Shown here: one piece after another, positions 3,413-27,500 of the stretch
Layout of the letters: each line of letters begins with the position of its first letter
Position numbering within the stretch: position 1 is the first letter of the stretch
NCBI GenBank assembly: GCA_904063045.1
Contig: CAJFCJ010000186.1
Coordinates: forward strand, 1-35,991
DNA length: 35,991 bases
Source: Dimorphilus gyrociliatus
Taxonomy: Eukaryota > Animalia > Annelida
Reading direction: 5' to 3'
Translations under genes and position numbers: made by a program
Notes under the pieces: generated by a model
What the model was told of the DNA's origin: nothing
Database searches by the model: none
What the model saw: only the letters and a program-made list of their open reading frames with translations

Positions 3413-4168
3413 TTTCTGATACTCTGAAATATGAAATAGATTTTGAAAAGTTGAAAAATCAGTTCCTCAAAATTATACCTTAAATGCTTTTTTTATAGCT
3501 TTTTCTTTTATTTTGACGCCATAAAAAAAATGCTAAAGGAACATATTTCATTTCACCATCTTTTTCGACATAGCTGTGTATAGATAAGAGCTAATAAAAT
3601 GGAACCTTCACAACCTTGAATGTTCCATAAATAAACCAGTGATTTGACTAACCAAGCAGATAAGTTGGTGGCTGTTAAGAGAAATAAGAATTCTCTCTTT
3701 ATTTTTATAGGTGTCATCTTTGCAAAACATCATCTAGAATGAAATCTTTATTTGAATAAAAGTTCACTTCTTTGGTTCATTGAGTTTTGGTTTTTGCCTT
3801 GTAAAATTAGCAACTCTTTTCAAGTAATCAACATTTGGCAGGGAATCTGTTTTAAAATAATGATTTCTACTAATCTTTTCCCACTTGAACTAGTGTCAGT
3901 TTTACACATTTCTTTCAAAGTTTTCTAATTCTGAAGTCAGTGGCTAGATGGTCATTTTTACCATGAATGTGTTCTACCTTTGCCTTAATGATTGTTTTCA
4001 AGACATTCTTGCAAGACATATTTGTTTTTTGGTCCTTTTACTGCATAGATGTTGCTTTTAGAAGTTTTAGTTTCAAGTGTGAATGAAATCGATCATTGAT
4101 TAGAATATCTTTTCCCAGTTACAGGAGATTTCATCAAAATTTTAAAACTTTCATAAAATATACCAAAA

Positions 4169-4445
4169 CTAACCCTAACCCTGACCCTCACCTGTACATA
4201 AGAAGGAACATAGAATTGAATCTAGGTCTTCCTGAGATACATTACTCGGAGAAGTGATTATAAATTGCTAAACCTGGCGATTATTTGGAAGGATACCCTC
4301 TAATTACTGTAGGACATAGGCGACAGACACCAGTGATAGAGTCTATAGAATCTAAGGCTGCCAAAAGCCAACTTCACCCCACCACCTTCAACTTTAAGGC
4401 TCCATAGCTCTGGAACTGCTTGGCCGATTTGGCTCAAAAATAAAA
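4169..4445. mobile_element. Probable non-autonomous repeat (MITE/Helitron-derived-like) starting with a (CCCTAA)n tract
   Basis: ctaaccctaaccctgaccct at 4169-4188. Downstream, actttaaggctccatagctctggaactgcttggccgatttggctcaaa resembles the core of invertebrate DINE/HINE-like elements. Boundaries are not resolved. Confidence 0.35.
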
Positions 4446-7533: not shown

Positions 7534-10500
7534 TCATTTCTTTATCTCTTGAACTAGGTCAGTGATTTTAGGGGATTTAAAATATATTCTTCTTGTAAAT
7601 AGGTTGAGAAGAAAGTCAAGTAACTCTAGTAAGCTAAGGACACTTCCACCCAGGAATAAACCTAGGAAGCCACCAACCTCACCTATGTAAGAGAATAGAC
7701 ACTAATTATCTAGTATTGAGTACTAAAACTGACTTACTAAAAAAGTTGCTAATATCATAACTTCTCTGTTGTTCACTCTTTTGGTATGTGAGTTGTGTAA
7801 AAAACACATCTACAGTTAGGAAATTATCTCTGAAAAGAATTGGGGCTTAAAAGGTAAAAGTTGTCAATTCATTTTATACAAACAATACAAATTGTTCATT
7901 CATTTCCATTTTAGATTTGTAAATATTGATACTTTTTGCCAAATCTGTTAAACATCTCGTAAGCGATGATTTCATGTTGAGAATGTTGTCTTCAAGATTA
8001 TTTAGAGACGCTCGTACTGGTTTAAAATAGGTGGTTAACATTTCGTTCAAATAGGAGTCGAGTAATTGTCCAAAGAATACGCTGACGTTTCTTGGTATCT
8101 ATAGAAAGAGAAATAGCTGTGAGTACATTTGTTTTAAGGTGTGGACAGGTGATAATTATCAAATTTTAATATCAAAATGTTTCTATGTACTTGCAATCTT
8201 TCGTTTGCTAAAAATGGAGTTTCTGGCTCTTCAACATTGGCCATTGGCCGCTGCCATATTGAGAAATTTTGTACCGAAAATGACAGTATAGTAGCTCCAT
8301 CTTCACCTTGATAAGCGTAAAGTGTGTCAATGTTTTCAACGGTTTCTATATAACCAAATTTCACTTTATGACTTGTTGCAGTAATCTCTTTGTTCATTGG
8401 TTCAATGATATTTGTTTGTAGTTTGTCAACGAGCGTGATAATTTTAGTAATAGCCTCATTTATGTTTGTCTCGTTCAAATTCAATTGATTATCTAAAATA
8501 TTGTTTTTATTATTGATAAGTTTTAAGTAGAACAGTTCAACATTTTTGGTGAATTGTTCAAGTTCTGACCATTCTTCATTGAAATTGAAATCGTTAAAAT
8601 TCTCAAATAATTTCCTATTGACAAACAGATGTTTAATGTTTTTTTCTTTGTTTGTCTTCCACTCTAACAGACTTTTGATAGTACTTGAATATTCATCCAA
8701 ACAGCTCAAAAAGCTGTGGAATGCTTGAGAGTATAAGATGAAATGCGATCTAAACTGGATAATAAATGTAGAACCTGAACTAAAAGTTAAAATGTCAACT
8801 AGTTTATTGACCAGAGCTTGAAATTCTTGATTTTGACGAGAGCATTCTTCCTTTCTCTCAACAGTAGCGTGTCTTCTAATTGGCAAATACACTTTCAGCC
8901 TTCTATTTTGGAGGAAAAATGTATCAAGGCTATCTACAAAACTCACGAAATCCTCTGCTATTGAAATAGTGTAAAGTAATTCTTGCTTGAGCGACATTTT
9001 CTCTTTTTTGATCTTCTCCTCAGGAATAAGATTTGATCGAGAGAAATCCAATTTTTTAAATAACTCACCTGCTTTTAAGACTGTTTCAGACAACGAATGC
9101 TTTACTTTTTCCCTCACGATTCCGAACGCTTGTTCAAAAGAGTCGTAGAATTTGAAGAATATTGGATAGAAATTAATCATATCAATATGATAGATCTCTA
9201 GTATCTTGTTCAGACAATTCCCCAATTTGAAAAACATGGATTCCTCATAAGAGAGAGTATTGGTTTTTACATATAGATGAAATTTTTTAAGGTTTTTTAA
9301 CGCTTTTCTAGAAATAGTTAAATCATTGATGAAAGTTGAACCAGTTATTCTCTGCTTTAAATGTTTTGCCTTTCGGAAATTTGAACTTAGTTTAACTGGA
9401 TTGATGCTCAAAAGACTTTCAATGCTTAGAGAGGAAAGCGCCGAATAAGATAACAATGGTTGGTAACTTTTTCTCGAGCAAGGCTCTACGCATGTACAGT
9501 TTTTTTGGTTTAAATTTGATATTTTTGAATTTGGTACAAGACAGTCGAAATATTTGGAGAGCGAACAAAATTTCTTTGACGTGTTCCTCTCTCCTTCGAG
9601 GAGAGGCATATATGAATTTAGGCAACCGCAGTTCTCCAAACTTCTATCCGTTTCACATTCCCTTTTACAAGTAGAATATGAATAGTTATCATAATATTTT
9701 AATGATTTTCTTCCACATTCTCCCCAAGGATGGGTTAAGCTAAAAACCTATAAATAAACACTTCTTGATTAATTGGTGATTGATTACCAAGGGATTGGGA
9801 GAAAAAAACGGCCCACTAGGCTAAAGTTCAGGCTAAGATTTTGGACATTTTCACAGTTTGGAGAATTTTCATTTGAACTCATTTCACTTTGTGTAGGCCT
9901 AAATTGAGGGTTAGGAAGAATAAAGTGGAAAGAAGCTTCGTAACTGGTTAGGGTTAAACACCAAAAAGTGAGCCGTTTTCTCCCTGACTCGGTTACCTAC
10001 CTCGCTGTAATGAACGGAAATCAACGAATGAAATCCAGGCGCAGCTGCAAAACCTAAATCTCTTACGAATGGAATTTCATTGGCATTGTGCAAGAAGATT
10101 TTTATTCCAGAATCCTTTTGCGGGCCAATCATATATTCGTATTCTTCAACATTTACAATCAAATTTAGACCCGAACTTGAACCTTCAACATTTTTTATGC
10201 GACTTAGAATATTTACAAGCACTACAAATCGAAATTAATTATTTCTTTACCCGTTTTCGTTGTTGATAGCAAGTTATTTTCATCCCAATTGAAAGAATGA
10301 CAGTAGCCATAATCCGTAAATTTGGATGTAAAATTTTTAAAAGAGCAAGGTACTCCTTGCCAAAAACACTCATAGATAAGATTTTCTTTTCTATGAGCAG
10401 TATCACTATGAAAAGTTTGTAGATCAATTTTATCTATAGAAGTCAATTAGTAAAATGTTTGTTAGTTTGCTACATAAGAACATTTTGCGTTTACCAATTG

Positions 10501-13500
10501 GCTGTACGTATCCTTCGATATCGTTCTTCATACTTTCCCATAGTTCATCACTAGCATTTCTTATAGCAGTTAAATTCCAACTTGAGTTTCTCTATAGAAC
10601 ACGAAATATATCTATCATAACAATGCTAAATATATAAAAGGAATTGATAAAATTCCTACTTGAAGACTGTCATTGAGACCTGTAGCTCCGATGAAAAACA
10701 ACCTAGCAGTGCCCTCTTCCTCACTTGTATCTCCTGATAATATTTCCCGAGTATTAGTAGTTGATGATGTACTGATCAAGAGTTGATTTGTTGAAGAGTT
10801 TCCGGTTGTAGAGACTGCTGTTTGAGATCTAGTTGGGTCAAGGCAAGGCTCTGTAACTGTTCTATTACATATAGAGCAGTTTGCTTCGTCCTCTCCTAAT
10901 GGGCAATCTATTTGACCATTGCAGAATAGACTTTTTGTCTTGCAAAGGGGCAAAGATGAGCAATAATACTTGGATTTACAAGCAACTGCAGATAGAAGAG
11001 AGGGAAAAGTTAATTTTTAGTTTAAACGATTAAATAAATACTTTGCGGTAGAGGACATTCTCCTACTGTAATATTATATCCATATATACTTAATCTTCTA
11101 TTTGTATACGTCCCACTTGCGACAAAAGCTATTTGACCATATCCAATTGGCAATTGAACAGCTGTCCATTGTTTATTTCTAACATGGATACCTTTGATCG
11201 TCCATATTCTTTGTTCTACTTGATTTTCTCCTTTCCAGTAAACTGATAGTGTAGATGTTTCTTTTTGTTCAGTAAATAGAAATGTAAACCTTTAGGTTGG
11301 AATCATTTTCAGTTCATTTTTATTATTAGTTTGTCATTGTTTGTAAATTAATATTCTTACCAAAATTCCAGACAACTTTCAGTCGTAATATTGAATTTAG
11401 GTGAAAATAATTTGACTGCTTCTTTAATTAAAGTTGTTGGATTTGGTACAAAGAGAGAAGCGTAGTAAACATCAACAAAAAAGTCTTTTCTTAAGATAAA
11501 AATTCCATAACTATTGGCAAAATCTTGAGAAAATCCACAAAATTTGTGTGATTGAATTAAGCATGATTTTGAAAATTCAGTTTTCCAGTGTTTTTCTATT
11601 TTTAACAAAAAAAAAACAAACAATCAAATTCATAAAGAAAATATTAAGAAAGGAACAAAAGATCTATAGATACGCATTGTACTGCAATTCTCTTTTTGCA
11701 GCTTTATCTCTTTTAACAACGTCCTATATTCATGCTGACTTGAAGATGATGTATTAAAATATATCTCAAACATTAAAACACTCTTTTGAGGATAGACTGG
11801 TACGATTATTCTATTCCATTTTTCAACCCGTAAAAACTTGAAGAGGTAGCTTGTAGATTTAAAAAATAGGTTGTAGCTAAACAGACAAAAGGAAACCAGA
11901 CTTACTTGTATAACACTTTATGGGAATCTGAAAATTGTTGAATTATTCTGAATCTATCGTTTATTGAGAAAGAAAATGTTGAATAGAGATCAAGCTCTAG
12001 GCATCCTTCTCTCTCCAAGTTTACTTCCGGTGATATTAAATTGGTTGAAAATCCTTTATTTAGAACTCCTTTCATTTCAACTATAGATTGTCGTTCTAGT
12101 TTTTTGTTTGTTTGTTTTTTTTAGAGAAAAATTCAACACATTCTTATCCCTAAAGTAGAAAAATCCATCACTTACCCCTTTCACCTCGCAGTAGAACTTG
12201 ATCCCTTTTCCATAAGCCATCCTTAGGACCACTGATTGTATAACCACACATTATCAGTGAATTGACATGAAACGTTACGTTCTGTTTGTAGCATCGTAGA
12301 CATTTATTTGGTGTTTTTTTTATACTAATCTACAAACTTGGTAAACATTCTACAGCTGTTTCGTCACTCCTATCTATACAATCTTCAATTCCATCACAAA
12401 TTTGGGTTTTATTTATGATTTCGCCAGTCTTACATAGATATTGCCAAGAATTGATTTTAATATCGCTCATAGATGTGGCATTTTTCAATATATCTTCGCA
12501 CTTTCGCCCATTATCAAAAGTAATATCATCAATAGCAATGTCTGATAGATGATTTTTTCCAATATAAGCAGTAAATAGAAATGAGAATGGTTGATTTATT
12601 GGATGTATAGTTAACCATGCCAATTGCCATTCTGCCTTTTGTCTACCAACAATTCTATACAGATGCTCAACATGAATTTCATTGAAAAATATACTAACAG
12701 TTAGATTTCCCATATCAAGTAAATTGTCAGTGAAACTATGCATATAGTAATAGAATCTTAGGCAGCTAGTTGTTTGTGATTTTGAAAAGAAGGGTGATAA
12801 AAGCTGTGCTGTTTGGCCAATCATTTGTCTAGCATTGTAAGAGTTTGTCAGCATGTAGTATCCAAAAAGTGATTTTTTTGTATGATCTCTACTAAGACTT
12901 CCAAATCCTAATAAAGTTGACCTGGTTGCACCTTTATATCTTTCCCATTTTATGGTTTTCTGCAAAGAGTCTCTATTCTTATAACCGGAAATGAAGCTGT
13001 CTTCAAAATCGCAATTTGCAATTACTCCTATATAGAGAGGGGAGAGAGAACAATCATGAACAATATTTCTATGAAAATGAGTGTGTACCGCAATTTTGCT
13101 CCTCGTCCGAATTATCATCGCAATCATTTTTCCTGTTGCACGTCTTATACTTTGGAATACATTTCTTATTGTTGCAGAGGAATTCATCTTTATTGCAGTC
13201 TATTAGTTTACGGTTTGTTTATGTATATTATTTATAGTTTAAACAGAAGAAAATATATACATACCGCAAAAAGGAATATTGCAGTATTCTTTCGAACCAG
13301 TATGAGATGTAAAACACCATGGGCCTTGCAAGTCTTTTGTTGGATTTCTACAAAAGTTTTTAGCCTGGAAGGGATAGAATTTTCTTTATATCATATACAT
13401 TATTAGTCTTATGCTTATGTTAAAAAGCTACTTCTTTTAAGCTTGTGCCAGGGAATTCGTAGCGAAGAGATTGAGACTCATTTTTAATGAATGCATGCAT

Positions 13501-15492
13501 TTCACTCCATCTTAGACAAGAATTATTTCTATTTGTTTTAGAGTGAGTGACGCCCTGGAAGTCTTCACCTATGACATTGTATTTGCATTCTGCAACTAGT
13601 TTTTTTATCTTTTAGAGTCATATCAAGATAGAATAGAAATTTTATACTTACCTATAGCGGTACACAGTCCAATTTTTATATCGTCAACAGCAATATCGCC
13701 TAAACTTCCTCCAGATACGATCCCTTCAATAGCAATTTGAAAAAGTCCGGGTTCAAACGTCACTGTAGCTCTATTCCAATCTTGAGAAATTGATGTAACA
13801 GTTCGACTCCAGATAGCCTTTTCAAAATTGCTTGTATCACGGCGTTTTATTGTTAAGAGACCAGCTTGATTGCCAAACATGCTACAAAAGAAAGAAATAT
13901 ACAAGTGAAGAGAAAGAGGGAGAGAGTGGAGGGATGAAATATTAAAATAATCTCACTTGTAATAAAACTCCATACACAGCATATTTCTTGATTGTAGAAA
14001 AGGCGAAATCAATTTTGCTACACTTCCACGTTGTCTGTTTGTCGATTCAACGTATATATAATAGCCTCTACCAGTTGTATGGTCTTCAATTGGTCCGGTA
14101 TTAAATGTACCAGTTGGTCCTTTTTGATTAATCCAGTCAAAATCATTTTCATTGTCATGATAAAAGTTACAAAAGTTTTCATCATCAAAATTACAAGTTA
14201 GAGCTCGTTTTTCACCTATAGAAAACAATGACATTAAATGGATATTTCTTCATTAGTCTTATTGAGTAGTGCCAGTGTTGGAAGGCTATGTTCTCCCCAT
14301 TGTAATTTACTTGATAATTAAAATTTGATCAACTATCTATCATTAAAGTTAGAATGTTAAATTTATGAAAAATATCATTTGCACTGCGAGATTTATCAAC
14401 TTTATTAATGCATTCATCATTCATTATATCCATTTATTTATTTGTAATTGCTCTCTCTCTCTCTCTCTCCTCTCTCTTATTAACTGATTTTGTTTACTTG
14501 ATTAGGTGGGTTGGTGAATAGGTAATTTCTTACCATTACATCTATCCCTTTGGTAGTAATTTGTCAAATTACTTGCAATTAGAACAGCTCCATCTGTCTC
14601 TTTTGTCAATCTTGTTAAATAGCAAACTTGAGTCTTAAAATTATAAACAATTGAATTGCAAGTCTTGTCAGCGAAATCAAGGCACAATGATTTACAAATT
14701 TTCTCAGTGACACCATGAAAAAATTTGTAGAATATTTCAAATCCTTTGAGATATTTATGCTCGTATTTGATTAGTTTGTCAACGCATTCTATAGATAATA
14801 AAATCATTAGTTAACTTGACTTGGAAGAGAATCAATAAATCATTATTTCATGTATCTGCTTAAAAATCAATCATCAATTAGTCTTACCATACGATCGTCC
14901 ATTCTCTGGCCATTTACTGTTAGTGCTTTTAAAAACTTGTTCAACCTTGTCATACAAACCCAATTCAAAAGTTTTAGTTATTCTTGCAAAGATGGGAAAA
15001 GATAAATGATAAATTGTTTTACAAAGCTTATTTGAAAGTATAAAAAACACCTAAAAAAGTTTTCATTGCATATTGTTACAGTTGGAAATTTCAATTCATT
15101 TGAATAGATCACTTCAACATTAACACTTTTAGGATAGCTCCTAAATGTTTTTATCCTATGCCCAAGAACATAGAGAAAACAAGCTACAGCTGTCAAGGTA
15201 GTTAATGTCCAAAATATCCTTAGAAAGAGTTAAAGGAATGAAAAATTATCAATAGTTTGTAGGTTTGTATTCTGTTTATATTTTCATACCTTCTTAATGA
15301 ATTGTTTCCACCTGTAATATACTTTACACCGTGGAATGCGGTGTCTTGAGTAAATTCTACTGTTTTCTGCAAAGTCGACTTTTCTGTTTCGTTAAATGAT
15401 GTTGAAAAGAATTGTTTTGAAAAGATAAAACACAAACTTTGCACAGAAATATTGTTGCTAATATTCATTGTTGATGGAAAGACACTAGACAT
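7534..15492 (-). CDS. Giant DEG/ENaC (amiloride-sensitive/ASIC-family) channel subunit, 23 exons, ~2,010 aa, with PAN-MAM-Kringle-LDLa-MAM-LDLa-MAM-MAM-LDLa in the finger region and a ~450-aa helical insert
   Basis: Manual exons (minus): 15492-15290, 15218-15051, 14982-14888, 14788-14534, 14215-13957, 13881-13652, 13595-13432, 13364-13265, 13199-13089, 13027-12338, 12281-12176, 12095-11906, 11849-11674, 11595-11361, 11289-11042, 10985-10660, 10591-10495, 10433-10251, 10182-10001, 9747-8191, 8098-7884, 7829-7738, 7682-7534. All introns are GT-AG with matching phases, apart from one frameshift inside exon 11. Family motifs are FTQDTAFHG (HG motif), TM1 [40 protein letters not shown]...[25 protein letters not shown]...GIKIFLH...GFAAAPG, the Cys-rich thumb (CKRECET...ENCGC...CTCVEPC), [16 protein letters not shown], and TM2 [24 protein letters not shown]. 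Confidence 0.85.
9797..9984. mobile_element. MITE-like element in DEG/ENaC intron 19
   Basis: Imperfect terminal inverted repeats gggagaaaaaaacggcccact (9797-9817) and agtgagccgttttctccc (9967-9984), with internal gggttagg motifs. The element explains the longest intron of the gene (253 bp). No TSD was found. Confidence 0.55.
10870..10985 (-). other. LDLa repeat 3 of the DEG/ENaC gene, followed by a Ser/Thr-rich linker
   Basis: [35 protein letters not shown], then an S/T-rich stretch to 10660. Confidence 0.8.
11042..12281 (-). other. Two divergent MAM domains (3 and 4) of the DEG/ENaC gene
   Basis: SCQFTDN.CGY...W...NLISP...GCLELDLY...KWNR...ENC, and SC...FCGF...KLFSP...SCLEFW...W...GEC. 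These are divergent, and there is a frameshift near 12247. Confidence 0.6.
12338..13027 (-). other. MAM domain 2 plus LDLa repeat 2 of the DEG/ENaC gene
   Basis: CDFED...RDHT...AQLLSP...CLRFYYYM...W...DIAIDDITF...C, then [31 protein letters not shown]. Confidence 0.85.
13089..13199 (-). other. LDL-receptor class A repeat 1 of the DEG/ENaC gene
   Basis: [37 protein letters not shown] in a single phase 1-1 exon. Confidence 0.9.
13265..13595 (-). other. Kringle domain (2 exons, absent from the ORF track) of the DEG/ENaC gene
   Basis: [13 protein letters not shown]...CLRW...EFPGTSLKE|[33 protein letters not shown]; the CRNP and PWC kringle signatures are present. Confidence 0.9.
13652..14215 (-). 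other. MAM domain 1 (2 exons) of the DEG/ENaC gene
   Basis: [11 protein letters not shown]...FDW...[18 protein letters not shown]...AKLISP...CMEFYYNMFG...[13 protein letters not shown]. Confidence 0.9.
14449..14476. repeat. (CT)n microsatellite
   Basis: ctctctctctctctctctcctctct in a DEG/ENaC intron; a shorter tract lies at ~22909-22925. Confidence 0.85.
14534..14788 (-). other. PAN/Apple module exon of the DEG/ENaC gene
   Basis: ECVDK...[32 protein letters not shown]...TNYYQRDRC; phase 1-1 exon. Confidence 0.75.
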
Positions 15493-16982: not shown

Positions 16983-16994
16983 TCCCACTCCTTT
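16983..16994 (-). promoter_or_regulatory. Polypurine tract (PPT)
   Basis: aaaggagtggga overlapping the env stop codon, just before the LTR; identical in the copy at ~22399-22410. Confidence 0.75.
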
Positions 16995-19674
16995 AAGACC
17001 TTGCTTCCACGAAAGGTCTTGGGCTTGAAACAATCAGTGTGTCACCATCCTTTTTGAATGTTGGATAAGTTTGTAGTGGTATTTCTTCTGGTTCAGCTGT
17101 TGGGGCTGTAGGTAACTTTTCTTTTCTAGCTAAAAGCTTAGCTAGCTTGGTGAAGTGTACTCTTTTCCAGTCTTTCTTCCAAAGAAACCAAATCAGAATC
17201 CCAATTCCAATGATTATTGTTATTGGAAGAAGTATGTTGATGAGTGTTTTGTAAGGTGTCCTGGCCCATGATGAGAATATATGTTCAGTTTTAGACAAAG
17301 CAGCATCAATGCCCAAATCATTAGCAAAGTTTATGTGCTCTTTATGTCTTGTTAAAGTGTCTTGAATGTATTCTAAAACTTGTTGAACTTGTTGTTGCTT
17401 CTTACCAACATCCTCTTTTATACCAAGCTGTATTAACTCAGTAAGTCTAGCAACCTCTAATTTTGGTTCTTCAATTTCATTGCTTATTTTCATTCTGATT
17501 GATTGTGCTGCTGCAGTCTGAAATCTGCATCCTTTCTTTGTGTAATAGATGAATGTTTTCTTTCCAGAATACATTGCTTGTTGATTGTGTTCAATGTCCA
17601 GTGGGTTTTTCTTAATTTTGAACAGGTGTTGTGTTTGGTCACAATCTCCATATCTTATATCTTCTTTTGTTATGTGGTAAGCATGATGGAGTATTGGATC
17701 AACTGAGAATAAGAGATCTTTATACTTGATGAGAAATTCTTTGGAGCATAATCCATTTTTGGTGATAATTGTTGTATCACACACTACTTGAACTGATTTT
17801 AATTCTGTACAAGTATTTAAGGTTGTTAGATCACCAAGCCATGTACTGTGCATTCCATGCTTAGATCCAAGTATTGTTGGTAGTTGAGGTGCCAATGGTG
17901 TGAGTAATGCTACCATCTTGTTTCTCATAATGAATTCTTTGCATAGAAGTTGTGATACTTGTTTGAAAACTGTTTGTAAATTTTGGAAATTTTTATCAAT
18001 GTTATTTAATAAAGCAGATGTTCGAATAGCATCTGCTATGTCTATTTTGTGAAATTTTGGCATCTGTATGCTTTCTGATACTCTTCTCCTCCATTCATGC
18101 TTCTTTGGTGTTCTTTGCAAAAGTGTAAATTTTCCATTTGCTTGATGTGTTTGAAATTGTTTATCTTTTGGACTTTGGTACCAAGTGTCCAGTCTTGGTA
18201 AGGGATTGAAACTAATTTTCTTCTTGTTGAGTTCAAAATCTTCTGCTTTTGCCATTCTAGCAGGTTCCATTTTGGTTGTTTTCAACATTTTGAGTATGTA
18301 TTTGTTGTTAATATCCCATATATCAGGTGAGATTATTTCTCTGACCATCCAGGTCCTAACCAGTGGTGTTACATGATTTTTGATCAGCATATGATAAGTC
18401 TTGTCACCACCTCTATACCAATCATTATAGGTTAGTATATTTTGTATTTCTGTATTATTTGCTTTTCTCAAAGTTGATATCTTTCCATCATAATTCTGCA
18501 ATCTTGCAACTTCTTTGTTTGAAATGATTTTATATTTGATATCTGCCATCATTCTGTTATCAGCATAATTTGAATTTGTAAGATCAGTTCTTAATAAGTC
18601 GTATTCCTTCTGGGGTACTAAAATTCTTGTTCCAGGACCACCATATCCTTTGATATATCTATCTTGATAAGGTAAATCCATTATTGCATAGTTGGGACAT
18701 GAAAAATATCCTCCAAGCTTAATGCACTCTACATTGTAGGATACTGCTTTCCATGGGGATTCATGACCAAGGAGATTTTGTCCTTTCTGAGGATTGAAAA
18801 TAATAATGGAATCCAGAGTTCTACAAAATTTATGTTTGATAGAACAGTCCTCTAAATATTCCAAGTTGGTTGTTATCTTATCCTGACTTGGGTGCCAATA
18901 AGCTTTGCCAATTTGGAGAATTGTTGTAAATTCTTCAACCACTGTTGTTCTTGGCCATTTGTAGTTTGATCCTTTGTTTTCATTGTACATTAGAAGGTTT
19001 CCTTTTTCAATGAGTTTTTGTCCATTTAAGGTCTTTTTTGACAATAACATTTTTCTGCATTGTTTGTCACTTAAGGTAAGTGTTTGTTTTTCAACTCTGT
19101 GTTTCTTTGCTCCAAAGAAGTAATGAGTGTAAAAGTTGATTCTTCTCTTTACCAAACACTTAACAGCTTGTATTGCCAAATTATCAGCTTTAATTTCATA
19201 AATATTTGCCATTATTTTGGTCATTTGTTTAGTTTTGAATGTGCAAATTGGTTCATCAGCCAGATCAAATGACTGATGTACTTGTTGCCCTTGACAGAAT
19301 TGTACTGAAGGAAGCATTCTCACAGTTATGTTTGCTTTTGTTATTGATACATTTCCCTGAACCAAGTTTAATAAGCATAGCGCTAGCAGAGTGTAAACAA
19401 TGGATCCTCTTATAGGAAGTGTTCCAACTTTCCTTTCTTGTTTCTCTACCTTGAGTGTGTTAACTCTAGTTGGTTGTTTGTTAGCCAATCTTAGTCTACT
19501 AGCATGGTAGAATTTTCTTTTGCCATTTAATATTTCCAATTCATAAAGACATTTTGTAGTATCAGTAGCAGTTACAATGTATGGTCCACTCCATTTGCTT
19601 GTATTTATCCTATTCATTCCTTGACCAATGTGTTCATTTTTTATGTGTACCCATTCACCAATTTGGTAAGTTGG
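16993..19674 (-). CDS. env: Integrase GPY/F C-terminal module continuous with an envelope glycoprotein (class III viral fusogen-like)
   Basis: The frame opens PTYQIGEWVHIK...KWSGPYIV (GPY/F). It continues through an internal signal peptide GSIVYTLLALCLLNLVQG, a Cys-rich ectodomain with AVKC...YTHYFFGAK...QCRKM...NYKWPRT, a TM segment LINILLPITIIIGIGILIWFLW, and a ~60-aa tail. Confidence 0.8.
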   Translation of the reverse strand, partial: PTYQIGEWVHIKNEHIGQGMNRINTSKWSGPYIVTATDTTKCLYELEILNGKRKFYHASRLRLANKQPTRVNTLKVEKQERKVGTLPIRGSIVYTLLALCLLNLVQGNVSITKANITVRMLPSVQFCQGQQVHQSFDLADEPICTFKTKQMTKIMANIYEIKADNLAIQAVKCLVKRRINFYTHYFFGAKKHRVEKQTLTLSDKQCRKMLLSKKTLNGQKLIEKGNLLMYNENKGSNYKWPRTTVVEEFTTILQIGKAYWHPSQDKITTNLEYLEDCSIKHKFCRTLDSIIIFNPQKGQNLLGHESPWKAVSYNVECIKLGGYFSCPNYAIMDLPYQDRYIKGYGGPGTRILVPQKEYDLLRTDLTNSNYADNRMMADIKYKIISNKEVARLQNYDGKISTLRKANNTEIQNILTYNDWYRGGDKTYHMLIKNHVTPLVRTWMVREIISPDIWDINNKYILKMLKTTKMEPARMAKAEDFELNKKKISFNPLPRLDTWYQSPKDKQFQTHQANGKFTLLQRTPKKHEWRRRVSESIQMPKFHKIDIADAIRTSALLNNIDKNFQNLQTVFKQVSQLLCKEFIMRNKMVALLTPLAPQLPTILGSKHGMHSTWLGDLTTLNTCTELKSVQVVCDTTIITKNGLCSKEFLIKYKDLLFSVDPILHHAYHITKEDIRYGDCDQTQHLFKIKKNPLDIEHNQQAMYSGKKTFIYYTKKGCRFQTAAAQSIRMKISNEIEEPKLEVARLTELIQLGIKEDVGKKQQQVQQVLEYIQDTLTRHKEHINFANDLGIDAALSKTEHIFSSWARTPYKTLINILLPITIIIGIGILIWFLWKKDWKRVHFTKLAKLLARKEKLPTAPTAEPEEIPLQTYPTFKKDGDTLIVSSPRPFVEARS

Positions 19675-20728
19675 GGTTTTCTTGTGATAGTTTTGTTTAC
19701 TCTATCTCTATATGCCTTCTTTTTCATGACAGATTTGCACAATGCAGTAGCTCTTATTTCTTCCATTTCATGCTTTCTATCAAATAGAAATTTTGTTGTT
19801 GGTTCTAATCTTGGAACTTCCATTAACAAATCTAAGACATTCCTATTCTTCAATCCAAATAATATTTCATGTGGAGTTTTGCCTGTGCTTCCCACTGGAA
19901 TTTGGTTTAAGCATGTTTGAATTATTGGTAATTGTCTTGTCCAATCTGTTAATTGTTCCATAACTACATGTTTATGTAGTGCTCTGCGAATTTCCAAATT
20001 CTTTCTTTCTACCATTCCATTACTTTGGCTATGGAATGCTGTTGTTTTTATTTTCCTTATTCCCATTGATGTAACCATCTCTGTAAATATTTCCCCCAGA
20101 AAATTCCGTCCTTGGTCTGTGAGAATTTCTTCTGGAATACCAAATATTGGAAAGTAGTTAAAAAACAAGTGTTTTGATATTTCTTCAGCTGTCTGAGTTT
20201 TTAATGGAAATAGGTTTGTAAATCTTGACATGTGATCTATAATGACAAGTATGTATTTGTAAGATTCATGTCCTGTTAGTGGTCCCATTATGTCCATTGC
20301 AATTCTTTGCATTGGTAGAGTTGGATGGGGTGTTTCAACCAATAGATGTTTGTTTCCAGGTGCTCTTAATTGTTCACAGAATTTGCAATTCTTTATATGG
20401 TCTTTAATTGTTTTCTTAAGTTGTGGATGCCAGAAAGCTTGTTCCAAAGTATGAATTGTTATGTCTACACCATAGTGTTCAAATATTTGATGTTGATGTA
20501 TTTGGTTCAGTAGGTTTGTTAAAGTTAGTAGTGGAATTACCAGTAATGGTTGACAACCATTCAGATACCATACTAAATCATCTTTGACAAACATATGTTC
20601 AATAAAATTTTGTATTCCTTGAACATTTCAACATCAATATTTGCTCCTTCCAATTTTTCTACAATTTTCATTAGCGTGTCATCCAAAACTTGTTCAGTGT
20701 AGAAGTTTATCTCAACAGGTTTATTTTT
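19641..20728 (-). mobile_element. pol: Ty3/Gypsy pol 3' end: RNaseH-IN linker plus DDE integrase (truncated by the N gap)
   Basis: HHCC zinc finger (HQHQIFEHYG...CKFC), core RIAMDIMGP, ILTDQGRNF, SNGMVERKN, and TPHEILFG. An upstream linker (EQVLDDTLMKIVEKL) is open to the gap in another frame. Single-base shifts occur near 20608 and 19676. Confidence 0.92.
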
Positions 20729-24590: not shown

Positions 24591-27500
24591 TCATAAGAGT
24601 AGACAAGTTGATGATTTTTTAATTTCTTTAGTTGGATTCTCCTTTTCCTTTCTTAACTGTTCAATTCTTTTTCTTTCTTCTTCTAGATGCCATCTCAACC
24701 GTGCCTTGTTTAGCTCCTTGTCTATATCTTTATTGTTCTGTTTTACTTCCAATACTTCCTCTCGCAGTTGCTTTATCATATTTTCCCTGCTTTTTAATTT
24801 TTCTTCAAATTCTCTATTCTTCTCTTCTTCTGTGTGTAATTTGTTTTCCATTGATGCCTGCTTCATTCTTTCATTATCATGGTTTTCCCCTTTTCTCTGT
24901 GTCATCTCTTCTTTATTTTCACCTAGTTTATTATCTTGCTGTTTTTCCTCTTCAGATTGTTTGTTTTTTTTAGAAAGAGCATCTCTCCTTTGAGCTTTTA
25001 GTTGAAAATCAATTGTATGAAGTAACTGCATAAATTCATCACTGTCACCAATATTTCTGTCATTTACTGTTGAAAAATTAATATACTTTAAATCTGTAAA
25101 AGCCTTTGACATTGGTCCTTCGGGTGGCCATTTTATATTCTCTAAAAGTACAGGAACAATTGGTTTTCCTAATTCCGATGATAAGCCAATTTCTCTTTTA
25201 CAGTTGACACTTTGAGAATACTTTTGAGTAACACAAGATATGATAAGTTTTGCTCTCCTTACTCCATTGTCAATTTTATCAAAAAGTGAATCACCTCCAC
25301 CCATTTGAGCAATATCAAGCCAACATTCAAATCCCTTTTCCAAAAGGCTTCTACACAGAGTTGTAACTAATTTTTGATTATCCCATTGATAGGAAATAAA
25401 GAGAGGTGGAGAGTTTCCTTTTAGCATTTCGGATTCATTGGAGTGTTGCTCCTTTTTTAGATGCTTTGTCCAACCAAAGTAGGGAGAACCTTTTTTGATT
25501 AATTCCATATTAGGCTCTAAATGAAAGCGAAGTTGCATTAAAAGTTCTTGGAATTTTTCTGGATGCCAGAAAATGTTTTGATTGTTATTTTTTTCATTTT
25601 TTTGATAGAATTTGATATATAAATATTCAGCTAAAATGGGACCCAAAGGTCCGCTAGGTGGCCAAGATAAATCTTCCATTAGTAAGGGAATAATTGCTTT
25701 TCCAAGATTGGCTGAGAGATTAATTTCGCGGCAACAATTTGTTGATTTTGCGTATTTTAAACTTACACAACTCAGAATGACTTGAGCAGACCTAATTCCA
25801 TCGTCTATCTTCTGGAATAGGCTATCGCCTCCACCCATTTGACCAATATCCATCCAAGCTTTGAAGCCAGCTTGCTCCAAATGTTTGCAAAGTAGTTTGA
25901 CCTCCTCCTGATGACCCCATTGATAGCTGATAAACACTTTTGGTTTTTCTATCATTTCAACTTTTTTATCTTCAATGATGGATTTTACAGATTCAAGGGC
26001 ATTTTCAACAATCTCAGCCGCATCAAGTCTATTCATATCTTTCAAATTCTTTAAGATTGCAAATGTTGCCTCCTTTGTATTATTAGTGGCAAACCATTCA
26101 TCAATTAGGGAAAGACACGGATCAGGTTGAGTAGCCCAATTTCTGACATCATCAACGCTATAATTGAGTTTTAATGCCAGTAGTCTCCAATCATTGTCAC
26201 TTGGTTTATTCATAAGGTCAGAAAGGTGACGGGACCAAGAAGGAGCATGGCTGAGAGTCATATGACTAAGTTTTTCTACTCGTTCATCAAGATTTTCAAC
26301 ATTATATTCAATCTTTTGAACTTGATTTTTCATCATTTCCAAATCTTCTTTTACATTTTCAATCTTTTCTTTAGTCTTTACCAGATCGCTGTCAAGTTCA
26401 ACTATCTTACCACTGTTATCCGTGACTCTAACATCAAGATTTTCCAATTCATCTTGGTGATCATCTAAAATGTTTGCAATGCCCTCTAGACTCCTCCCTT
26501 CAATAACATTAATAATGTATTGAACTTGATCAACCATTGGACCATCTTTGAGTTTCAGCAGTTCATCTTTGTAAATAGCAACAGGTTGTTTAAATTTACA
26601 AACAATACCTTGTAAAGCTGATAATAGAAAGGAGCGGTGCTCAGTTTTCACTTTGTAGAAAATTTCCCAAATCAAATTTGTATAAAATGTTGCCAATTCC
26701 TCTGTTTCAGCCAATTGAGGCAGGTTACTGACAACAAAAATACTATTTGGGTGAGAGCTTTTTATGAAGTTGGCAAGTCTTTTGTGATAATTGACAAACA
26801 AATCTTTCCTGTTTGACATGAGGCTGTACGTAACATTTAAAACGAAATTTGAATTTTCTCCTTCTAAATTCTCCAATGTATATTCCAGAAATTCCTCATC
26901 TATTATACTAGGATTGTGTTCTATTATTTTTTCAACTAGTTCCATAAATTGGAATATTGTGTGATTGGGCAGGTTTTTTACAGTTGCCAGTATAGTTTGA
27001 AAATTTGTATGAACATAGCTTGATTGTCTTGGATACATTTCAAGGATTTTGGCTGTCAAATGGGAAATATGAAGAATATCACTATTTCAATAAAATATCT
27101 ACCTAGACTGGTCCCGTCACCAGCTAAAAAATTGTCAACAAGTTGTCTTTCAGCATCGCCTTTCTTCTTAACCGTTAATTCATAAGTTGAATAGACATTG
27201 TCAGCTGACACCTTTAACCATAAGAATATCATTACTTACTAATTGGTGTTGGAAAAAAGGTGTCTTGAAAGAGATAGAAGAGAAAAAGTACCTGAATCTC
27301 AATATCATCATCTTGATCTTTCAGCTTCTCAATAGTTTCAATCACAGGGGGAAGAAACTCTTTAAGAAAATTACACTGTTCAATAAAAGATGAGAGATTT
27401 CAATGACAATTCAAAAAGGAAAAAAATTGAATATCTTAAATACTTCATTATAAAATGTTTCAAGGCACTTGAGTATTATATGAGCAGAAAGGGTTCTCTT

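Follow-up and report, generated by a model that had tools for sequence, protein, structure and literature searches.

The DEG/ENaC gene and its exon structure

The stretch of DNA analysed here, referred to as the window, comprises 35,991 nucleotides (nt) of the annelid Dimorphilus gyrociliatus (contig CAJFCJ010000186.1, positions 1 to 35,991 of the forward strand) and is AT-rich, with about 30-35% G+C. Its minus strand from 15492 to 7534 encodes a subunit that belongs to the DEG/ENaC (degenerin/epithelial sodium channel) superfamily, in which an array of extracellular recognition modules is inserted into the finger domain. An earlier reading of the window (the sequence-only reading) had proposed a single DEG/ENaC gene of about 2,000 amino acids (aa) carrying the modules in its finger, and the open reading frames (ORFs) of this strand contain all the motifs that it named. 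That proposal is borne out by a 23-exon model with a single open frame of 1,987 aa, by the two transmembrane segments, by the intron phases, by a complementary DNA (cDNA) joint, by the homologous contig L003 of a relative and by a protein of the orthonectid Intoshia linei, all of which are described below.

The exon junctions of this model were set one by one by hand from stop-to-stop ORFs and splice sites; an automatic splice-path model was discarded, since it left out the FPTVTICN motif and cut the exon of the second LDLa module. All introns are GT..AG and measure 54-102 nt save two, of 318 nt (14216-14533) and 253 nt (9748-10000), and the intron sizes of the gene fit the genome-wide median of 66 nt published for D. 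gyrociliatus (10.1101/2020.05.07.078311). The first of the two long introns has a counterpart of about 266 nt in L003, and longer introns were linked to open chromatin in the same genome paper (10.1101/2020.05.07.078311).

The gene is a genuine member of the DEG/ENaC superfamily. Five pieces of the Pfam ASC domain (PF00858) cover profile positions 22-79, 137-195, 196-263, 274-391 and 429-455; four of them score 38.8-57.6 bits against a cut-off of 23.6, and the piece containing the second transmembrane segment (TM2) reaches 20.9 by itself. A Kyte-Doolittle hydropathy scan found exactly two hydrophobic peaks, at aa 69-87 (TM1) and aa 1941-1963 (TM2), and detected neither a signal peptide nor an extra membrane span within the insert; therefore, by DEG/ENaC topology, everything between TM1 and TM2 is extracellular. 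The hallmarks of the superfamily are present, namely the HG motif (FHGVKY), the post-TM1 FPxVTxCN motif and a selectivity filter of the G/S-x-S type in TM2, and the thumb cysteines align with those of ASIC2. The ASC pieces, the hydropathy scan and the thumb alignment thus agree with the sequence-only reading, according to which the HG, TM1, thumb and TM2 motifs were intact.

The channel itself is encoded by exons at the two ends of the gene. Exon 1 (15290-15492) contains the start codon, the cytoplasmic N-terminus and the HG motif, and was placed by its ORF, a splice-site check and a high-scoring segment pair (HSP) with L003 (3496-3576, 67% identical). Exon 2 (15051-15218), recognised by ASC 22-79 (E 3e-13, on the piece at 14981-15229) and the first Kyte-Doolittle peak, encodes TM1 and the post-TM1 strand (FPTVTICN) and ends in phase 2, while the 95-nt exon 3 (14888-14982), with a phase-2 acceptor and a phase-1 donor, encodes finger helix alpha1, as aligned to module-free relatives from molluscs and nemerteans. 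On the other side of the modules, exons 18-19 (10001-10433, as 10433-10251 and 10182-10001) encode finger helix alpha3, the beta-ball and the palm (ASC 137-195 and 196-263). Exon 20 (8191-9747) encodes the Cys-rich thumb, covered by ASC 274-391 and the ASIC2 alignment, and then, in the knuckle, about 480 aa of helical insert, modelled with AlphaFold2. The end of this insert lies in exons 21-23 (7534-8098, as 8098-7884, 7829-7738 and 7682-7534), together with strand beta12 (NFLTVDVFF), TM2 with a GGS filter, a short C-terminus and the stop codon; ASC 429-455 maps to these exons, and the TM2 exon is 76% identical to that of L003.

The finger insert and its modules

The insert spans aa 156-1195 (exons 4-17), about 1,040 aa where the sequence-only reading had estimated about 1,030, and lies between finger helices alpha1 and alpha3. 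Its order is PAN, MAM, Kringle, LDLa, MAM, LDLa, MAM-like, MAM-like and LDLa, followed by a Ser/Thr-rich linker. Seven of the nine modules score above the Pfam gathering cut-offs (MAM, PF00629, 26.4 bits; LDLa, PF00057, 24.1; Kringle, PF00051, 34.3; PAN, PF00024, 21.4), and the remaining two are degenerate MAM-like domains.

Exon 4 (14534-14788, phase 1-1) encodes the PAN/apple module, with six cysteines, a PAN_1 score of 28.8 bits (E 1e-6) and 55% identity to L003. It is followed by MAM1 in exons 5-6 (13652-14215, as 14215-13957 and 13881-13652), with 70.9 and 43.8 bits, and by the Kringle in exons 7-8 (13265-13589, as 13589-13432 and 13364-13265), where the exon for the second half reaches 36 bits and that for the first half 13.4, and the joined domain has six cysteines and the sequence NFCRNP...PWCF. 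LDLa1 (exon 9, 13089-13199) scores 43.3 bits, with six cysteines and the calcium cage DCDDNSDE. Exon 10 (12334-13027) encodes both MAM2 (95.8 bits) and LDLa2, which has a score of 25.7 bits and a conserved acidic cage with four cysteines. Exon 11 (12176-12281) provides the N-terminal strand of MAM3, its sole usable in-frame part being 12231-12176 according to the splice sites and the comparison with cDNA, and exons 12-13 (11674-12080, as 12080-11906 and 11849-11674) provide the remainder of this degenerate domain. MAM4, also degenerate, is encoded by exons 14-15 (11042-11595, as 11595-11361 and 11289-11042) and scores 14.5 bits, below the Pfam cut-off. When a query profile made of this gene and its ortholog was compared by hhalign with the MAM reference alignment, MAM4 was matched with 95% probability (E 1.8e-8, 138 columns), whereas MAM3, detected by hhalign alone, gave a weak match (55% probability, E 1e-4). 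The nine modules counted in the sequence-only reading are therefore upheld for the seven that pass Pfam and for MAM4, but MAM3 is a weak case and two of the nine are degenerate. Finally, exon 16 (10660-10985) encodes LDLa3 (24.4 bits) and the mucin-like linker (35% Ser plus Thr), and the 97-nt exon 17 (10495-10591) is an extra finger segment with three N-glycosylation sequons that leads back to the channel.

Without aa 156-1195, the remaining protein aligns across the seam to the module-free mollusc and nemertean relatives. In this alignment exon 3 corresponds to their conserved alpha1 (FR-x-[TS]-x-A-x-x-x-G-x-Y) and exon 18 to their alpha3 (H-x-x-E-D-x-I-x-x-C-x-W), and the seam falls in a single short loop, aside from the stretch encoded by exon 17, which is extra relative to the molluscs. 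The correspondence of both helices and the short loop at the seam thus indicate a true domain insertion. In addition, the module blocks are all bounded by phase-1 introns, which is the classical signature of exon shuffling.

Splicing and cDNA evidence

The GTGTTT donor of exon 2 is in phase 2, so that exon 3 is required and cannot be bypassed by splicing exon 2 to exon 17 or 18. Exon 3 in turn joins the PAN exon in phase 1. The sequence-only reading had set the module exons between FPTVTICN and the conserved alpha3 block. A direct splice from FPTVTICN to PAN was ruled out because the only in-frame join needs a GC donor and the alpha1 exon (14982-14888) intervenes. Between the last LDLa exon and the alpha3 exon, too, there is a further exon (exon 17, 10591-10495).

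Contigs were examined from three runs labelled 'DNA?', one of which (X2) behaves as cDNA, given that its joints skip CT..AC on the plus strand, corresponding to GT..AG on the gene strand. Four of the predicted introns are supported by X2 joints, and on the minus strand each of them is GT..AG. Two of the joints come from the window copy: a contig of 302 nt, with a single mismatch, connects 10660 with 10591 and so the last module exon (LDLa3 and linker) with finger exon 17, and another joins 10251 to 10182, removing the intron 10183-10250 between exons 18 and 19. A further contig matches the window exactly within the MAM2 exon (12665-12850). Introns 11290-11360 (MAM4) and 11850-11905 (MAM3), as well as the join of exons 11 and 12, are seen in X2 contigs of a second version, a paralog or allele that differs at about 5-9% of aligned bases and is present also in X1 genomic contigs. 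In the region of the TM1 exon (15083-15345), other genomic and cDNA contigs are about 90% identical to the window and then diverge, one cDNA reading on as ...SITVCNQNKF; these variants in both genomic DNA and cDNA indicate that close DEG/ENaC paralogs exist and are expressed.

Orthologs and relatives

Exon 20, used as a HMMER query against 1.84 billion cluster representatives, matched a 2,120-aa protein of Intoshia linei (residues 1398-1898), a 1,109-aa protein of Capitella teleta and two ORFs of Logan assemblies. The strongest comparative evidence for the architecture is found in contig L003 (29% G+C), where all exons from the HG motif to TM2 are collinear with those of the window at 30-72% identity, the ends of the HSPs coincide with the window exon boundaries and the intron positions are shared except for intron 3. 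In L003 finger helix alpha1 and PAN form a single uninterrupted open exon (3876-4229), and thus a conserved segment of the channel is physically fused to the first module. A second gene of the clade in an L003-type organism was observed on another contig (L006, Logan SRR23372229), with alpha3 to thumb and part of the helical insert in a 450-aa exon; a 150-aa ORF upstream of it has no Pfam match.

The Intoshia protein (OAF70867.1) combines ASC with MAM, Kringle and LDLa in Pfam, and scans of its segments gave PAN, MAM, Kringle, LDLa, three MAM matches (two of them below the cut-off), LDLa and ASC, which is the order of the window. At its locus (L002, LWCA01000103.1; 8427-8540, 8915-8970 and 20626-20703), exons for TM1 and FPRVTICN lie upstream and one for TM2 lies downstream; OAF70867.1 omits the upstream ones, and the model begins with a Tc1/mariner-like transposase fragment. 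The partial Capitella protein (ELU13901.1, 1,109 aa) presents alpha1-like and PAN-like segments, the latter by alignment only, followed by MAM, Kringle, LDLa, CUB, MAM and ASC. No recognisable FPxVTxCN or TM2 was found within 27 kilobases at the Capitella locus, which contains N gaps. When the proteins of Intoshia and Capitella were used in word-seeded protein searches, each matched only itself. Both proteins are unnamed or hypothetical in their source databases, and their shared architecture is in line with the prior annotation that the sequence-only reading had considered possible.

In a quick maximum-likelihood tree of the channel core, which held no ASIC reference set, the window gene groups with L003 (Shimodaira-Hasegawa-like approximate likelihood ratio test, SH-aLRT, 99), then with the second Logan gene (98) and then with Owenia (80). 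Intoshia belongs to this group as well, which has weak support, the branch of Capitella is long and unreliable, and the mollusc and nemertean clade stands apart. Two tandem DEG/ENaC genes of 1,163 and 1,054 aa were observed in Owenia fusiformis (CAIIXF020000001.1, 44.92-44.95 megabases). Ahead of finger helix alpha3 they encode a Laminin_G_3 jelly-roll together with a linker rich in Thr and Pro, which may represent a simpler or ancestral form of finger insertion. A database protein (P0059, 1,460 aa) has three consecutive ASC domains, either an annotation fusion of tandem genes or a concatenated channel.

The knuckle insert of about 480 aa in exon 20 is predicted by AlphaFold2 to be all-helical, with long helices and a predicted local distance difference test score (pLDDT) of 80-93. 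A search of this fold against the PDB returned generic helical bundles only, none with E < 0.001. Relatives of 920-1,060 aa from molluscs, nemerteans and annelids (P0155, P0011, P0018 and P0151) also have inserts of about 450-500 aa, and in the oyster relative the insert is modelled with pLDDT 92-96 and helices of up to 79 residues on an ASIC-like core. Since it is common to relatives from the three groups, the knuckle insert is a trait of the clade rather than of this gene.

Neighbouring ORFs

Directly upstream of the channel gene, the minus strand at 16993-20594 contains two long ORFs, one of 874 aa without a Pfam match and a second with an integrase zinc-binding domain and an rve core, pointing to a retroelement. 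Farther away, an ORF of 822 aa on the minus strand at 24591-27059 encodes a Death domain and, after it, two TIR_2 stretches.

Proposed origin and mechanism

The explanation that we favour, with a probability of about 55%, is that this gene belongs to a lophotrochozoan clade of DEG/ENaCs and that the module arm shuffled into its finger binds a partner and is coupled to gating. The clade consists of uncharacterised lophotrochozoan DEG/ENaCs, all members of which carry the helical knuckle insert of about 450-500 aa. In an annelid sub-lineage, exon shuffling would have placed the module block in the loop between alpha1 and alpha3 of the finger. If the channel is a trimer, as are the solved DEG/ENaCs, every subunit would contribute, at its outer upper corner, an arm of about 1,000 aa; the figure of up to 27 modules per trimer given in the sequence-only reading presupposes a homotrimer. 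We postulate that the arm could have a macromolecule as its binding partner, for instance a matrix, glycoprotein or protease-type ligand, and that, being anchored on both sides in the finger, it would let binding or pulling reach the interface of alpha1 and alpha3 with the thumb. This interface controls gating in ASIC, ENaC and FaNaC, and the arm may accordingly serve as a built-in tether or receptor arm. What the analysis shows is the gene structure, its topology, the identity of the modules, their conservation and part of the splicing. Partner binding and its coupling to gating are plausible and wholly conjectural, and it is likewise pure conjecture that the channel is gated, as suggested earlier, by tethering or by a protein, lipoprotein, glycan or matrix ligand.

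It has long been asked how DEG/ENaCs are linked to their extracellular surroundings, and the separate tether proteins or glycans have been hard to pin down; a channel with its own matrix- or protein-binding modules at the gating corner would make the tether idea directly testable. We regard it as possible, with the odds against it, that these are the first DEG/ENaCs to read a stimulus through built-in receptor modules, either as a self-tethered mechanosensor with the arm in matrix or cuticle and the knuckle as a strut, or as a channel gated by a macromolecular ligand. The layout kept in Dimorphilus, the L003 organism, Capitella and the orthonectid Intoshia is a clean case of exon shuffling into an ion-channel loop, and the shared architecture is a rare genomic character consistent with an annelid affinity of orthonectids.

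Alternative explanations

A number of observations weigh against the favoured explanation. MAM3 and MAM4 are degenerate and LDLa2 has just four cysteines. The X2 contigs, which are fragmentary and of low depth, do not cover 12856-14956 and thus exons 4-9, and they contain neither the junction of exons 3 and 4 nor a full-length RNA. Every cassette is of phase 1-1, so that isoforms lacking some or all modules are possible. In exon 11, the window lacks 5 nt after 12249 that the expressed paralog or allele retains in its X2 transcript, and with the ancestral-type sites (donor after 12338, acceptor before 12281) the window runs into a stop. Two in-frame routes are available to the window copy, either the donor at 12334 with the acceptor at 12231, which is the route of our model, or skipping of exon 11; both are canonical, and neither was observed in the available cDNA contigs. 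In addition, for no member of the clade has a ligand, a tether, a current or a site of expression been described.

The deletion in exon 11 leads to a rival that accepts the architecture as real and regards the window copy as a recently damaged member of a small paralog family, giving truncated transcripts or targets of nonsense-mediated decay, with the paralogs as the working genes. Exon 11 of L003 encodes the start of MAM3, ERNVTCEFTNKYICGYTI, in phase 1, and adding the 5 nt of X2 to the window restores an 18-residue stretch that matches it, together with the downstream frame, so the lesion is evident against both the expressed version and the ortholog. Full-depth genomic contigs agree with the window at this point, which makes an assembly error unlikely, although the run may be the assembly's own source; the variant contigs about 90% identical to the window in DNA and cDNA also fit this rival. 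Against it, the other 22 exons are open with their splice sites, cysteines and channel motifs intact, the two rescue routes are canonical and in frame, and cDNA contigs matching the window copy downstream of exon 11 show that it is transcribed and spliced. We therefore consider recent damage doubtful but a serious contender: the window copy may be impaired, and that it makes the full-length protein is something that we infer. A further rival follows from the phases, namely that the gene mainly yields a conventional channel of about 950 aa, made by joining exon 3 to exon 18 in frame, and that isoforms with modules account for a small share or are limited to one stage or cell type. Any subset of modules could be skipped in frame and the single cDNA run does not cover 12856-14956, but in L003 skipping PAN would lose alpha1, which shares its exon, the module exons there are open and keep their cysteines, the domains and their order are retained in Intoshia and, as a variant, in Capitella, and cDNA splices module exons to each other and to the finger exon; optional use of the modules is thus unlikely, and less likely than a damaged copy.

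Modules of this kind often make up secreted proteins, and in principle the module exons could form a nested gene of their own, within a long intron of the channel. Nevertheless, neither a signal peptide nor a start context is present, the ATG that precedes PAN sitting in the pyrimidine tract of the acceptor, cDNA splices the last module exon to the finger exon (10660-10591), alpha1 is fused to PAN in L003, and strand and collinear order are the same in three further species; this possibility, which the sequence-only reading had named as one that could overturn it, is rejected and for practical purposes refuted. Topology, intron phases, the partial cDNA and the conservation in three further species give good support to the single-gene architecture. 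Regarding function, extracellular proteases such as plasminogen, HGF, meprin and enteropeptidase typically come with PAN, Kringle, MAM and LDLa, and the insert might instead be an autoinhibitory or protease-docking domain, like the cleavable tracts of the ENaC finger, with proteolysis setting the activity. The insert does lie in the same finger region as the protease-sensitive sites of ENaC (PMC11026163), but a furin-type site (R-x-K/R-R) is found nowhere in the 1,987-aa model, and we hold this role to be quite improbable.

Comparison with known channels

The architecture is real and is not described in the papers that we found, though the unnamed database proteins of Intoshia and Capitella share it. 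Full-text literature searches found no paper on a DEG/ENaC with MAM, Kringle, LDLa or PAN modules, and the D. gyrociliatus genome paper mentions only a canonical ENaC repertoire (10.1101/2020.05.07.078311).

The nearest solved relatives of the clade appear to be the ASICs. A module-free member from Babylonia (P0011) matches ASIC2 with E 8.5e-60, ENaC gamma with 8e-30 and FaNaC with 3e-19, and the AlphaFold2 model of the oyster relative matches the ASIC1 structure 2qts with E 4e-21 and a target-normalised template modelling score of 0.6. ASIC1, ASIC2 and ASIC5 share with the window protein the HG motif, two transmembrane segments, FPxVTxCN, the Cys-rich thumb and the GxS filter. However, ASICs have about 500 aa, of which the finger takes up about 80 aa, and their knuckle is short and made of two helices, whereas the window protein has about 1,040 aa more in the finger and about 480 aa more in the knuckle.

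Among the lophotrochozoan DEG/ENaCs of 920-1,060 aa, there are proteins of Ostrea (XP_048752185.2), Pecten, Patella, Haliotis, Babylonia, Mytilus, Lineus and Tubulanus, which belong to the same clade and have the helical knuckle insert and 33-39% core identity, but lack finger modules, their ASC profile being contiguous over 1-391. The nearest named annelid relatives, CAH1775106.1 and CAH1775107.1 of Owenia fusiformis with the 1,163-aa tandem neighbour, share the knuckle insert at 42% core identity and differ in that a single ConA-like domain is detected in place of the nine-module array. The Intoshia and Capitella proteins resemble the window protein in having PAN, MAM, Kringle, LDLa and further modules (MAM, LDLa) within the ASC domain, but their identity is 26-28%, and Capitella has a CUB domain and a model that lacks both transmembrane segments.

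The finger corner formed by alpha1 and alpha3 is described as a gating hot spot across the DEG/ENaC superfamily, where the FMRFamide pocket of FaNaC, ion and protease sites of ENaC, pH-sensitivity residues of ASIC and proposed matrix-tether sites are located (PMC11026163). In the tether model, as presented in PMC11026163, 10.1101/102756 and PMC7958617, the upper ectodomain is linked to the matrix outside the cell, and this link would transmit force to the gate. In the systems to which this model is applied, MEC-4 with MEC-1, MEC-5 and MEC-9 in C. elegans and the N-glycan-to-matrix link of ENaC, the tether consists of separate proteins or glycans, whereas in the gene described here candidate matrix-binding modules form part of the channel polypeptide.

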